A stretch of 64,000 nt of DNA from Octopus sinensis (GCF_006345805.1 NC_043004.1:82646001-82710000), one strand, 5' to 3'. Positions 9,951 to 55,560 are shown, counted from the first letter of the stretch. The notes: generated by a model from the sequence alone, not told the origin. Numbers and translations: made by a program.

Positions 9951-10320
9951 TATTGTTGATATAGTTCTTTCTATCCACTTTGAAAATTGTTGATTTAATA
10001 TAAATTAGCGGCTATTTATATGTTTTAAGAAGCTTAGCGAGCAATATTCAATTTGAAGTATATTTTAAATCCATAACAACAGATTTGAAATAATCCCTAC
10101 ATACAAAAAAGCGGAAGATATTATATAACAGATTTATCCGATTTCTTCTTTATTTCCAGTTCGTTCGTAACACACGAGATTTGCAGCACTCTAAACTTAA
10201 TATAGAAGGAAAATTGAAGTACTAGAGTAATTAAACAAAAACAAGGCCTCTCTATTTTATGTCAATATATTTATCTTTCTATATAGAAGTAAATTGGGAG
10301 AAATATTTAATTACAAAAAT

Positions 10321-10950
10321 ATGGAACTAAAAGACACACAATTCAATAAAATACTGCAGTTTTATGGAAAAATTAATATTTTTAAGATATCACTTATGAA
10401 CATATCACTGAAGTCTCTCAAATGTAAATATATATGTATCTCTGCTTTTTATATCCTGTATTCTATATATCTGATTGCAAACCCCATTATATATATGTGT
10501 TATCTAATAGAAGCGTATCATGGCGAAACTGATAACATATTTGTATTTATTTATGCACAATTTTTTCTGTGTTTGCTTTCACTCTACTGTCTGATCAAAT
10601 TCTTCCGAAAATCTAAAGGGAAATAAATACACGAAGCATTCACCGAACTTACAATTGAAGAAGACGATGAAAAATTCTATAACAATAACTTAATATTTTC
10701 TTTTATATCACTTTCTATAATGATCTTACTGCTGCCTCTTATATTAGTTATTATGCTCTCCGTCCTCCCGATTCTCATGAAATATGTTTGAAATCCCTCA
10801 ATAAAATATCTAAGCAGCATTAAAACTCTTGATTTTAGTATTTCATTAATTTTCAATCTATTTGATTGTATAACATTTACATGCGTACTATGTGATTGGT
10901 ATATCAATCTAGCAATTGGGATCGCACTGCAGCATGAGTTTAATAAAGTA
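10321..10950 (+). pseudogene. GR-like receptor unit 1 (pseudogene)
   Basis: Starts MELKDTQFNK; in-frame stops TAA 10624-10626 and TGA 10788-10790; truncated by (TA)n right after HEFNKV. Confidence 0.85.
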
Positions 10951-11261
10951 TATATATATATATATATATATATATATATATATATATATATATATATATA
11001 TATATATATATATATATATATATATATATACATATATACTATATATATATATATATATATATATATATATATATATATATATATATATATATATATATAT
11101 ATATATATTTTGTGAAATAGAAAGATGAATAATATTGTTGCAGATTAATCAAAAGTTTAACCGATACCTTGGTAGCAAAAATCACAGCAGAAGACAGCAC
11201 GGTTGGAGGTACAACCCTATGGTGTTGCAACCGTGCGTTGGTGCGGATAATTGAATTTTAA

Positions 11262-11627
11262 TATTATTAGTGAATTGAAGAAATGGAGTTGAACGAAGAT
11301 TGAACAGAAATCGTTTTATTGCATTCTACACGTGTTTCGAAAGCCACAATTTACCAAATTCCGATTGAATAAGGAGACCATATTGTGTCTTTCTCTTCAG
11401 GAAGAAATAGGAAATCCGTTGGGAAAAACAAAAACAGAACAGAGGCGGAGCAAAACAACGGATTTCCATCGGATTTCCTATTTCTTCCTGAAGAGAAAGA
11501 CACAATATGGTCTCCTTATTCAATCGGAATTTGGTAAATTGTGCCTTTTGAAACACGTGTAGAATGCAATAAAACGATTTCTGTTCAATCTTCGTTCAAC
11601 TCCATTTCTTCAATTCACTAATAATAT
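11262..11627. mobile_element. Fold-back element (~160-bp arms, ~50-bp spacer) with one hammerhead ribozyme in each arm
   Basis: Arms are near-perfect reverse complements. The right arm reads ttc-CTGAAGA(11488-11494)...GAAAC(11549-11553)-ACGT-GTA-gaa; the left arm has the same motif on the minus strand. Confidence 0.8.
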
Positions 11628-11684
11628 ATATATATATATATGTATTTCTATATACATATATATATATTCATATATATATGCACA

Positions 11685-51789: not shown

Positions 51790-51990
51790 ATACACGAAAG
51801 AGTCCTGAAAAGTTTCTGGTTTTATGTAAATGAAAATGCAGGAGGATCTGTTAATTACCATTTTATATAATATATTCCCCACTCAGATTAAAACACTTAT
51901 TGTAGCCGTCCGTCTGTTTTTCTAAATCATGTTAAAGAAATCAGAAGATTGGGCCTCCAGCAAAGCCTTTCGCGATACCCCTAATAACAG
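51790..51990 (-). mobile_element. Mariner-derived 3' fragment
   Basis: Minus strand carries RYNKC..L.GEYI-like C-terminal residues followed by a terminus-like sequence. Confidence 0.4.
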
Positions 51991-52135
51991 GAGGTTTTAA
52001 ACACACCGTCATACACATATACTCCCATGTATATATATATATTATACATATATATATATATATTATTGATAAAACGGTAAGATAACAAAAGAAAGAAAGA
52101 GACCTCAATATTATGTAAATAGAGGAAATTTATCT

Positions 52136-54565
52136 ATACAATATGTTACATTACTCGGTAGTCAAGATAAAACTCTGAGTTTCAGATGCCGAAGTGGAAA
52201 TCCACAACACCATCTCTTCGGTTATCTGGCTATTTGAAAACGTTATGAAAAATTACCGTTAAAAATGAAGGGAATTACTCTGTTATAACTCTGCTTTGCC
52301 TGCGTACTTATACATCGCTCGCATTTTTCGTCATAAAAATTATATAAAAATACATAAAAATATATAAAAATATATAAAATATATAAATCTTCTTGGGACA
52401 TAACACAGAAAGCATGTTCTATCCGTTTTCTTTAGGGGACCAAAAACGTAACAGAAATTTAGTCACATGTGGGCATGATCCGAAAAGCTCTGTCCTTGTA
52501 TTTAGACATGTGGTAGGGTCTAAGCTGCTTTTCCAGATAAGCCATCTCTCCATGTCGCATAAACCGCACCTTCCGCTGCCGTTAGTATAGGGCTTACATC
52601 TGGCCAAAATCTTCCATTGTATGTTATAATCGACACCTTTATCTCTTAAAGACCAAATATGATTGGATAATTGTGTCGCTATCGCCTAACATCGGTTGAG
52701 GACTCTCACAAACAAAAGAATCTAATATGGACGCATATCACATAGATTATTCTATGAAAAATATACCGATCCCATCAAAGGATTTTTACTCTAAGAAACT
52801 TCTGCAAAAAATTACTGATGTAATTAGCGTATTAGATGGAAGGAATTCTTTTTTTGACACAGAAGCGAACACCAAGGAAAACATTTGCTATCGGATAAAA
52901 TCCAAAAATTCCCTCCTAGGATTAAAGGCTTGGAAGATTTCGAAGCGGACCTGCTGAAGATCATGAGCAAAATAAAGTTTCGTAAGTCTTTTAACAATTT
53001 CCAACATAAATTGAAGAAAGATATTGATCATATAAAAAGCTCCAAGAAAAAAAGCACTTTTTCGGATAAAACCAAGAACTTATACCTGTAGATAACAGCA
53101 AATACACACAACTCTTACACAACACATCATTAATAATTATACTAAGGCTAGGGCACAGACATATAACGAAATTAATAAGAAGCTAGCGTCATCGCCGCTA
53201 AACTTAAATTATGAAAAAAAAAATAGAAAACTCTTCCCCCAAAAGAGGTCCTTTATTACTATTAAAGACCACAAGAAACTTCCTTCCACCCTAAATGTAG
53301 GCTTAATCAACCCAGCCAATTCAGAACGCAGGGATTATTAGCAACTAGAAATTTTAGATAAAATAAAACAACAATTAAGACCGATACATGCTATGTGCAA
53401 TGGTCCCAGATATATAGACATCGGAGTATCTCAAAAAGATTAGAGTTAAAAATAGTTAGTACGAGGATTTCTAGACACTCTCATCTATGAGGAACTTAAT
53501 TCTCAATGATGCGTTGCCCAGTTTTTTATATTATAAAGCTTTAAAGATAGTGGTTGTTTAGCGACCAAATAAAATATTACACCCTATCACATCCCAAACA
53601 ATAAGGAAATGAATAATCGAAATAGGAAGGTCATCCTGGTTACGCCCCCTTACTCACCCGAGGTGGCCTTCAATATAGGTAAATATTTCCTAGCACTGAT
53701 AGATAGACATTTTCCAGTTAACCATGCTTATAGGAAACCTCTCAATATACAACAATTTAAAATAGTTTTAGTTCAACTACCAATTTTAAAAACATAATCA
53801 ATCATAACATACAAAAAAAACACAAGAAGAAAACAGCTGTTCATGCAGGATAAAGAATTGTGCCCTCTAAAGGAGCTTGCATGTCCAAGACCATCATATA
53901 TGAAGCTACCGTAAACTCTATAACCACTAAAGACACCGTTTCGACGAAGAAATACGTGGGCCTGAAAGAGGTAATTTCAAGGCCAGGTTCAATAACCACA
54001 CTTTGAGCTTTAGGCACTGGAACAAAAGAAAAGCGACACAATTATCCAATCATTTTGGTCTTTAAAGAGATAAAGGTGTCGATTAAAACTACAATGGAAG
54101 ATTTTGGCCAGATGTAAGCCCTATACTAACGGCAGCGAAGGTGCGGTTTTGCGACATGGAGAGATGGCTTATCTGAAAAAAGCAGCTTAGACCCTACCAC
54201 ATGTCTAAATACAAGGACAGAGCTTTTCGGATCATGCCCACATGTGACTAAATTCTGTTACGTTTTTTGGTCCCCTAAAGAGAACGGATAGAACATGCCT
54301 TCTGTGTTAGTCCCAAATAGATTTTAATATTTTTATATATTTTTATGTATTTTTATATAATTTTTATGGACGAAAAATGCGAGCGATGTATAAGTACGCA
54401 GGCAAAGCAAGTTATAACAGAGTAATTTCCCTTCATTTTTAACGGTAATTTTTCATAACGTTTTCAAATAGCCAGATACCGAAGAGATGTGTTGTGGTAT
54501 TTCCACTTCGGCATCTGAAACTCAGAGTTTTATCTTGACTACCGAGTAATGTAACATATTGTATA
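52136..54565 (+). mobile_element. Penelope-like element with ~545-bp inverted terminal repeats around a deleted RT/GIY-YIG core
   Basis: 52136-52680 is inverted relative to 54032-54565; core has IKDHK, KCRLINPA, PPYS, IIYEATV and FKARFNNH motifs; hammerhead-like motifs at 52165-52227 (-) and 54474-54535 (+). Confidence 0.85.
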
Positions 54566-55319
54566 TATATATATATATATATATATATATATATATATAT
54601 ATATATATATCTATATATAAAATATATATATATCGCACAGGGCCTAAACATAAACGGAACAACAAGGATAGACAAAGGAATTAAGGCGATTACATTACCC
54701 CCCTGTGCATAACTGATACTTATTTAATCGACCCCGAAAATATGAAAGGCAAATTCGACCTCGCCGTAATTTGAACTCAGAACGCAACCGCAGACGAAAT
54801 ACAGCTAAGCCTTACGTCAGGCATGCTAACGATTCTTCCAACTGGACGCGCTTTATATATGCATATATACACACAGTTATATACAGGTACGCACACATAT
54901 AGTCTTATGTATATACAGACATACAATCACGTAGGCCCACGCATGTATACAGTTTTGTATCAGGGTACCTCAGAAATGCTATATCACAACGTAATAAATT
55001 GTTACCATTAATGCTCACGCTAACATATTCATTAGAAGAATTAGAAGTATTCTTTTATGCAGTAGAGAACGGCCTTTTACTCAAGAAACGTGAATTCGGA
55101 ACCAATGCTCTATAGAATGGGAACAACTTGATTTCAATAAAACATCGTTATTCCCATAATTGCACTTGCGGCATAAATTTCATATATGTGTCTGTGCGTG
55201 AGGGTGTGTGTATATGTGAGTATGTGTGCGTGTGTGTATGTGTGTGTGTTATTATTCATATTTATATTTCTATACGCTTGAAAAGGTGTTCGTTTAATTC
55301 ATAGAATCTAAGTTTTGTA

Positions 55320-55560
55320 CGTTTTAAGAAGCTTAGCGAACAATGTTTAAATTTATATATATTATAAATCCACAGCAACAAATTTCAAATATTCCTTACA
55401 CGAAATTCATTATAGAGTTAAAATTGAAAAACTAAAGATCTTACATAAAAATTGAACTTGTATATTTTATGTCAACGATTTTAGCTCTGTCTGTGTCTTT
55501 GCATTTTATATCCTGCATTCAGTACATCTGATTGCAAACCTCATTAACTATGTTAATAAT
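55320..55560 (+). pseudogene. GR-like unit 7 relic (upstream block plus a short TM1 piece)
   Basis: AAGAAGCTTA at 55326; tctttgcattttatatcctgcattc..tacatctgattgcaaacc is homologous to the TM1 region; then interrupted by a SINE. Confidence 0.65.

Follow-up and report, generated by a model that had tools for sequence, protein, structure and literature searches.

A probable array of alternative first exons of a gustatory-receptor-like locus in Octopus sinensis

A 64,000-nucleotide stretch of the Octopus sinensis genome (NC_043004.1:82646001-82710000, assembly GCF_006345805.1), hereafter the window, carries seven collinear paralogous units on its + strand. As located by a listing of open reading frames (ORFs) and by tblastn searches with the intact units, they span 10.3-55.6 kb of the window and are spaced 4-13 kb apart. 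All are of one type, a single long first exon of about 950 bp that encodes the N-terminus and the first six transmembrane segments (TM1-6) of a protein related to the gustatory receptors (GRs) of insects. A first reading of this DNA, made from the sequence alone, had described seven collinear + strand paralogues, which our searches bear out with the seventh unit as a relic, and had taken them for seven genes. Instead, each unit consists of a long 5′ exon only, no exon for the seventh segment (TM7) occurs in the window, and five of the seven units are damaged and apparently dead. We consider it likely that the window holds part of the variable-exon array of a GR-like locus, in which one or a few transcription units would draw on the units as alternative first exons. 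Rather than seven genes, the units would then probably be exons that share a last-helix module located outside the window. We arrive at this reading because the units end at a splice donor, because the window lacks TM7 exons, and because the relatives of these exons share three 3′ exons.

The paralogue repeat is real and far beyond chance, with tblastn E-values of 1e-29 to 0 for the units and of 4e-4 for the relic, U7. Only two of the seven units are intact. U4 (40416-41366; ORF listing, tblastn, Pfam and the ratio of nonsynonymous to synonymous substitution rates, dN/dS) and U5 (45896-46837; ORF listing, tblastn and dN/dS) are variable exons of 317 and 314 codons, respectively, each of which runs from its own ATG to the donor TCG/GTAAGT, where the slash marks the end of the exon. 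Units U1-U5 open with ATGGAAC and encode MELK[DE], so that five units, and not the six counted in the sequence-only reading, begin with ATGGAA; U6 lacks codons 1-107 and U7 has no ATG. The two protein motifs noted in that reading are present in all units that keep the regions concerned, namely A-L-x-[YH]-E-F-N-K in U1-U6, with E-F-N-K invariant across the alignment, and H-D-T-[LM]-S-[RK]-x-L-x-L-[LV]-N-E-[ST]-[FY] in U2-U6. The proposed phase-0 intron after TM6 also holds: in each of the five units with a preserved 3′ end (U2-U6), the sixth hydrophobic segment is directly followed by a phase-0 donor of the form [TA]CG/GTAAGT.

The damage in the five remaining units consists of stops, a frameshift, an internal duplication, 5′ truncation and large deletions, as seen in tblastn alignments. 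The pseudo-exon U1 (10321-10950) has two in-frame stops; it covers codons 1-210, up to EFNKV, where a TA microsatellite cuts it short. U2 (15542-16488) is a full-length variable exon that has a single frameshift near 16180 and keeps the donor ACG/GTAAGT. The pseudo-exon U3 (28881-30150) contains an internal partial duplication, in which intact codons 1-102 are followed by a degenerate, stop-bearing stretch and then by a second copy of codons 58-317 (29374-30150), with the donor TCG/GTAAGT kept. U6 (49867-50466; also assessed by dN/dS) is a 5′-truncated pseudo-exon that is directly preceded by repeat sequence (49565-49844) and has only codons 108-317, but keeps its donor. In U7 (55250-55572; also detected by blastn), the ATG and the first ~34 codons are deleted, leaving a remnant of the upstream region (55250-55400) and the 31 codons 35-65 (55480-55572). 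On its 3′ side, a short interspersed nuclear element (SINE) at about 55584-55789 is followed by homology to the intron of U3 (55927-56058).

No TM7-coding exon was found anywhere in the 64-kb window, on either strand. A tblastn search with the C-terminus of P0001, the best database relative described below, detected no constant exon in the window, and a strict scan of the window for a terminal exon with a TYhhhhhQ-type TM7 motif detected none either. Short-peptide tblastn with the PAM30 matrix and blastn-short, using both O. sinensis constant modules as queries, also found no constant exon on either strand of the window, where the identical search in a positive control recovered all three constant exons of the P0001 locus with E-values of 1e-16 to 1e-28. 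The constant module is absent, too, from the 8.4 kb of the window downstream of U7. A relaxed scan for the TM7 motif gave two matches, about the number we estimate for chance, and these were rejected as they have no companion exons; candidates at chance level at 3186-3221, 6241 and 36315 were rejected for the same reason. The regions downstream of the units have no conserved non-repeat blocks, and share only intron-proximal sequence and SINE-like repeats. Conserved downstream blocks at 27417-27600, 34114-34292, 35055-35250, 35939-36109 and 54639-54799 were considered as exons and rejected; since they have stops in all frames and recur in both orientations in O. sinensis and O. vulgaris, we assign them to the SINE-like repeats.

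In relatives, by comparison, the 3′ exons are annotated and are shared. The best database relative is isoform X1 of O. sinensis LOC118764608 (P0001, 389 aa), which is 40% identical to the window units. Past the alignment with the window exons, P0001 has 71 further residues ending in GSFITYILVVIQTKPL, and ILVFLNRLTTESHGIDVGGCFVITPSSTLT is an example of a peptide encoded by its constant exons. In its locus (L001, on CM016866.1), P0001 is encoded by the long exon 10001-10954 together with exons at 46673-46741, 47649-47738 and 49533-49589, and the splice out of the long exon passes over paralogous long exons at 16398, 27576 and 42321; two further long exons lie upstream. These three constant exons are phase-0, comprise 23, 30 and 18 codons, lie up to 36 kb downstream and encode a TM7 with TYILVVIQ. 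The long exon at 27576 is joined to the same three 3′ exons in the protein P0016. In the neighbouring gene, LOC118764607, the long exon of isoform X2 differs from that of X3 and X4, with a near-identical 3′ module common to all of them; the annotated isoforms P0024 and P0012/P0026 combine different large exons with the same small exons. O. bimaculoides LOC106880719 is built likewise, from a long exon and the same type of 3′ module. In O. vulgaris, an array (L002) of 68 kb comprises eight long exons and, like the window, lacks a constant exon. The annotation of O. sinensis has no more than two constant modules, and when the constant part by itself was used to query the protein collection, the two genes of O. 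sinensis and the one of O. bimaculoides were all that was returned. It appears that few TM7 modules serve many long exons.

The shared 3′ module may itself be alternatively spliced. Judging from proteins P0012, P0024 and P0026, two alternative acceptors are apparent for the first constant exon (46673-46741 of L001), and isoform X3 of LOC118764607 has VHSITRSIHYMQFQ before DIKPEVVAK, the point at which X2 and X4 begin. We also considered L001 of O. sinensis and L002 of O. vulgaris as the window's own locus and rejected both, as the three are distinct paralogous arrays.

The family to which these exons belong is very narrow, with 21 representative clusters among 1.84 billion. All members whose source is named are from Octopus, and the closest relatives are from O. 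sinensis, O. vulgaris and O. bimaculoides, which, together with a repeat that is 93.6% identical to its O. vulgaris copy, agrees with the octopus host proposed from the sequence alone. The window exons themselves are absent from a collection of approximately 15 billion proteins, in which the best identity to them over a substantial length is about 57%, and the 45-46-aa N-terminal fragments P0018 and P0013 reach about 85%. The annotated O. vulgaris gene behind P0013 (10001-58380 of L002) is chimeric, combining transposon-derived sequence with pieces of two different variable exons, and illustrates how such loci are mishandled by automatic annotation.

Pfam matches, topology and fold together make the assignment to the GR-like, or seven-transmembrane ion channel (7TMIC), family well supported, as the sequence-only reading had proposed. 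The Pfam family 7tm_7 (PF08395) has its own cutoff at 26.6 bits. Two relatives exceed it, P0026 with 30.3 bits and P0012 with 27.4 bits in a colinear alignment to model positions 165-367 of 370, while P0023 (25.1 bits), U4 of the window (22.6 bits, E 7.6e-5) and P0016 (15.7 bits) fall below. The profile match that had been suggested as a check was therefore obtained for the relatives, but not for the window exons, which lack the TM7 part and are sub-threshold on their own, as are most single members. In total, 7 of 31 members match 7tm_7, and every other Pfam family is matched by at most two. A search of PDB sequences with the family profile gave no match.

Full-length relatives have 375-389 aa, of which exons like those in the window contribute 314-317 aa with TM1-6. 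P0001 has seven hydrophobic segments. The parts of it predicted to be inside (the N-terminus and the even-numbered loops) are 35-70 aa long and contain 24 lysines and arginines, and those predicted to be outside (the odd-numbered loops and the C-terminal tail) are 5-22 aa long and contain three. By the positive-inside prediction, the protein would thus have its N-terminus inside the cell and long intracellular loops. TM7 of the relatives contains TYILVVIQT, which agrees with three of the four defined positions of the motif (T/S)Yhhhhh(Q/K/E)(F/L/M), the last being T instead of F, L or M; this motif is among the criteria for GR-like proteins (GRLs) given by Benton et al. 2020 (PMC7746228). The three 3′ phase-0 introns of L001, compared by phase and number, agree with the family hallmark listed in the same paper, and the window units carry the donor of the first of these introns as the conserved GTAAGT.

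The structural comparison points to the same family. An AlphaFold2 model of P0001 built on a 31-sequence alignment has a predicted local distance difference test score (pLDDT) of 78.1 and a predicted template modelling score of 0.75. (An earlier model from a 10-sequence alignment, with a pLDDT of 48, was unusable, and its top matches to insect odorant receptors (ORs) and their co-receptor Orco were not significant.) When the P0001 model was compared with the PDB using Foldseek, the top 20 matches were all insect OR, GR or Orco channels, with a probability of 1.00 and template modelling scores (TM-scores) of 0.44-0.65. The best of them is AgamOR28 (8v3d; E 2.4e-4, TM-score 0.65), and the others include Orco (6c70; TM-score 0.62), BmGr9, DmGr43a, Gr64a and MhOR5. 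After the top 20 there is a sharp drop to unrelated proteins, with probabilities of at most 0.57 and TM-scores of at most 0.31; G-protein-coupled receptors (GPCRs) reach TM-scores of 0.14-0.19 and probabilities of at most 0.10. A best match to a GPCR, a transporter or another fold had been named beforehand as what would count against the GR assignment, and the relative P0001 shows none. By analogy with the insect channels, the products may function as tetrameric, ligand-gated chemosensory cation channels.

In a maximum-likelihood tree, the window units form a clade with the O. vulgaris array and the first exon of L001 (support 98/96). Within the window, U1-U3 constitute a young subclade (100/99), and U4-U6 are on older branches. 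Nei-Gojobori estimates of dN/dS are 0.49 for U4 versus U5, at a dS of 0.65, and 0.35-0.71 for the intact window exons versus other intact exons, but 0.9-1.2 for the damaged U3 and U6 versus close relatives. This contrast between intact exons, at about 0.5, and damaged ones, at about 1, is the pattern expected for live versus dead exons. The birth-and-death turnover postulated in the sequence-only reading is corroborated by the damaged units, the dN/dS contrast and the tree. As far as can be judged from sequence, U4 and U5 are probably live exons under purifying selection, and U1, U2, U3, U6 and U7 are dead ones that remain from this turnover.

About 300 bp upstream of each unit are conserved as well, with a TATA-like TATATAGAAG approximately 45 bp 5′ of the ATG in the alignment. 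The region upstream of U1 (10021-10320), a putative promoter or 5′ untranslated region with the TATA-like TATATAGAAG, and those upstream of U2 (15242-15541; 88% identical to that of U3), U3 (28581-28880) and U4 (40116-40415), all on the + strand, were recovered by both blastn and alignment; the region upstream of U5 (45596-45895, +) was recovered by alignment. Such conservation would be compatible with one promoter per exon.

If our interpretation is correct, transcription would begin at one variable exon, from its own upstream region, and the GTAAGT donor of this exon would be joined to the first available acceptor, that of the shared three-exon block downstream, with the intervening variable exons removed as intron. 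The shared exons (23, 30 and 18 codons), which should lie 3′ of the window, would supply the last intracellular loop and TM7. The predicted product is a subunit of ~385 aa, in which TM1-6, the ligand-binding part in the insect relatives, would vary and the pore-lining helix TM7 would be constant. Four subunits would form a ligand-gated cation channel, and one locus could thereby give rise to a set of receptor subunits that differ in TM1-6 and have TM7 in common. A bolder extension, which we offer only tentatively, is that octopus GR-like loci with variable and constant exons are very large, with several arrays of TM1-6 exons, dozens of them distributed over more than 100 kb and served by about two TM7 modules. 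Each sensory cell might then use one exon through promoter choice, in a manner resembling protocadherins, and the loci might encode a second, so far undescribed family of chemosensory channels beside the Cys-loop receptors.

Several points weigh against the interpretation of the units as alternative first exons of a GR-like channel locus. The constant exons of this array were not seen, and are either beyond the window or nonexistent. No annotated transcript or database protein joins a window exon, or an exon of its clade, to a constant module, and the isoforms of the relatives are database gene models. The conservation upstream of the units could reflect mere recent co-duplication rather than promoter function. 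The genome is AT-rich and dN/dS was derived by simple Nei-Gojobori counting, with values of about 0.5 that correspond to moderate constraint only. Finally, the TM7 part of the P0001 model, though only this part (residues 349-389), is of low confidence, with pLDDT below 50.

These points must be considered together with the competing explanations. One of them is that the window contains seven separate, complete tandem GR-like genes, each with private downstream TM7 exons. The units have their own ATG and upstream region, and the distances between them would provide room for private 3′ exons, but nothing in the window resembles the strongly conserved constant exons that the same search finds in L001. 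Moreover, there is no TYhhhhhQ-type terminal exon, the two matches of the relaxed scan being roughly as many as chance would give and lacking companion exons; the downstream regions have in common only SINEs and the immediately intronic sequence; and in the relatives the 3′ exons are demonstrably common property. Seven complete genes are therefore highly improbable. We give even less credence, indeed almost none, to the idea that the proteins are GPCRs, transporters or other helical membrane proteins and that the weak 7tm_7 match is an artefact of composition. It is true that the window exons alone stay under the Pfam threshold and that the family profile matches no PDB sequence, but relatives exceed this threshold with colinear alignments that reach the end of the model, the predicted N-in topology is the opposite of that of GPCRs, and the top 20 structures are all insect OR, GR or Orco channels, with GPCRs and ABC transporters at TM-scores of at most 0.26.

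It is also conceivable, but in our view unlikely, that the array is orphaned and decaying, its constant module having been lost or left behind, so that no functional receptor would come from the window and U4 and U5 would only have escaped damage so far. Five of the seven units are already dead, no database transcript or protein contains these exons, the constraint is only moderate, and the array has received many insertions of SINEs and long interspersed nuclear elements (LINEs), all as this explanation would have it. Against it, U4 and U5 have remained open over 317 and 314 codons at ~32% GC despite a dS of ~0.65, their dN/dS is well under the values of the damaged exons, and their donor sites are perfectly conserved; pseudo-exons beside live ones, for their part, are normal in loci of this kind (PMC2204066). 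A final alternative leaves the use of shared 3′ exons intact, but assumes that the products are not chemoreceptors and act instead in light or temperature sensing or in development; this has some chance of being true, albeit a small one. Isoforms of Drosophila Gr28b, for example, sense temperature and light. The functions of non-insect GRLs are, moreover, largely unknown according to Benton et al. 2020 (PMC7746228). On the other hand, the family has expanded in tandem in one lineage, diverges rapidly and mainly in TM1-6, and is highly pseudogenised, which is the usual signature of environmental chemoreceptors and suggests such a role here.

Besides the units, the window is rich in repeats, and the large gaps of the array are occupied by transposable elements (LINE and SINE-like). 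Between U2 and U3, the 12.4-kb gap consists largely of two inverted copies of one LINE-type retrotransposon, at 16983-20732 (- strand) and 23597-27049 (+ strand), which have endonuclease and reverse-transcriptase domains and are 89-92% identical to a copy in O. vulgaris L002. Between them lies a minisatellite (22019-22439) with a 67-bp unit, 6.3 copies, a 90% match and a 33-bp sub-period. A third copy of the LINE (58899-61747, +), with an 844-aa ORF, an RVT_1 match (E 5e-29) and an endonuclease domain, sits downstream of U7, where constant exons might have been expected. The SINE-like repeat, of ~160-240 bp, occurs at 27417-27600, 34114-34349, 35055-35308, 35939-36166, 51237-51636, 54639-54860 and 55584-55789, in both orientations, and is also frequent in the O. 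sinensis and O. vulgaris loci. Three of its copies, in 34.1-36.2 kb, follow one another at intervals of ~900-950 bp, suggesting that a segment was duplicated in tandem.

A further element has copies at 31772-32088, 32541-32961 and 33178-33469 of the window, at 45610-46371 of L001, where it lies shortly before constant exon 1, and at 11307-11993 of O. vulgaris L002, whose copy is 93.6% identical to 32557-32961 of the window. Since the window copies (31772-33469) are not followed by a constant exon, we treat the element as a probable repeat. Long (TA)n-type microsatellites (5695-6074, 10950-11110, 58560-58901 and many more) give rise to spurious ‘YIYIYI’ ORFs on both strands. The GC skew is strong at both ends of the window but opposite in sign, with +0.27 at 1-4000 and -0.27 at 60001-64000, regions in which only repeats and LINE sequence were identified.

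The Cys-loop chemotactile receptors are the current explanation for contact chemosensation in octopuses. If insect-type GR-like channels have expanded in this lineage, they would add a second candidate receptor family, for instance in the suckers or the olfactory organ, and its interest would rise if the arrays turned out to be transcribed in sensory tissue with a choice of exon per cell. For annotation, the consequence is that these exons will escape gene finders designed around whole genes, and that counting ‘genes’ would be misleading because the exons share a TM7 module. Full-text searches of the literature gave no account of GR-like genes in cephalopods and no case of this architecture beyond the arthropods; an earlier mention (e.g. 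Robertson 2015) is possible.

The proposed architecture can be compared with several known systems. In the vertebrate clustered protocadherin and UGT1A loci, tandem long variable first exons with their own upstream regions are combined with shared short 3′ exons. The likeness lies in the arrangement of variable first exons and constant exons and is a functional analogy only, as the proteins are unrelated and promoter choice is putative in the octopus array. In their animal family, the GRLs or 7TMICs, the octopus proteins resemble other members in their length of ~375-389 aa, seven transmembrane segments, predicted N-in topology, long intracellular loops, TYILVVIQ in TM7, 3′ phase-0 introns and Orco/GR-like fold, but differ in that the octopus family is very narrow and that the last position of the TM7 motif is T, not F, L or M. 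GR-like proteins exist in Mollusca (PMC7746228). The chemotactile receptors that have been characterised in octopus belong to the Cys-loop, nicotinic-receptor-like channels and are lineage-specific and tandemly expanded (Allard et al. 2023, as cited in PMC12635824). The proteins encoded in the window share with them the property of being lineage-specific, tandemly expanded candidate sensory ion channels, but are of an unrelated fold and family: Cys-loop ligand-binding and four-transmembrane channel domains were matched in none of our Pfam scans, and the top Foldseek matches were OR, GR and Orco only. The distinction from the chemotactile receptors drawn from sequence alone is thus upheld.

The closest known system is Drosophila Gr39a, together with Gr28b and Gr23a. 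In Gr39a, each of the 4-5 large exons encodes six transmembrane segments and has a start codon and a donor of its own; TM7 comes from three small exons that they share, and the locus also contains pseudo-exons (PMC2204066). The window likewise contains tandem large TM1-6 exons with their own ATG (U1-U5) and donor (U2-U6), and shows exon duplication, divergence and pseudo-exons within one locus, and the octopus relatives have three small shared phase-0 3′ exons for TM7 and the C-terminus. Unlike Gr39a, the octopus loci belong to another phylum, with merely 10-14% sequence identity to the best structural matches. The octopus arrays are also larger and more dispersed, with seven exons in 45 kb in the window and eight in 68 kb in O. 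vulgaris as opposed to 4-5; the splices in O. sinensis extend over at least 36 kb, and the shared exons of the window array itself were not observed. A conserved phase-0 intron after TM6 would ease a convergent origin of the architecture, and the same layout in Drosophila Gr39a and Gr28b suggests that this intron repeatedly permits diversification by exon duplication. With the present locus, it becomes testable whether the architecture was inherited or arose convergently.

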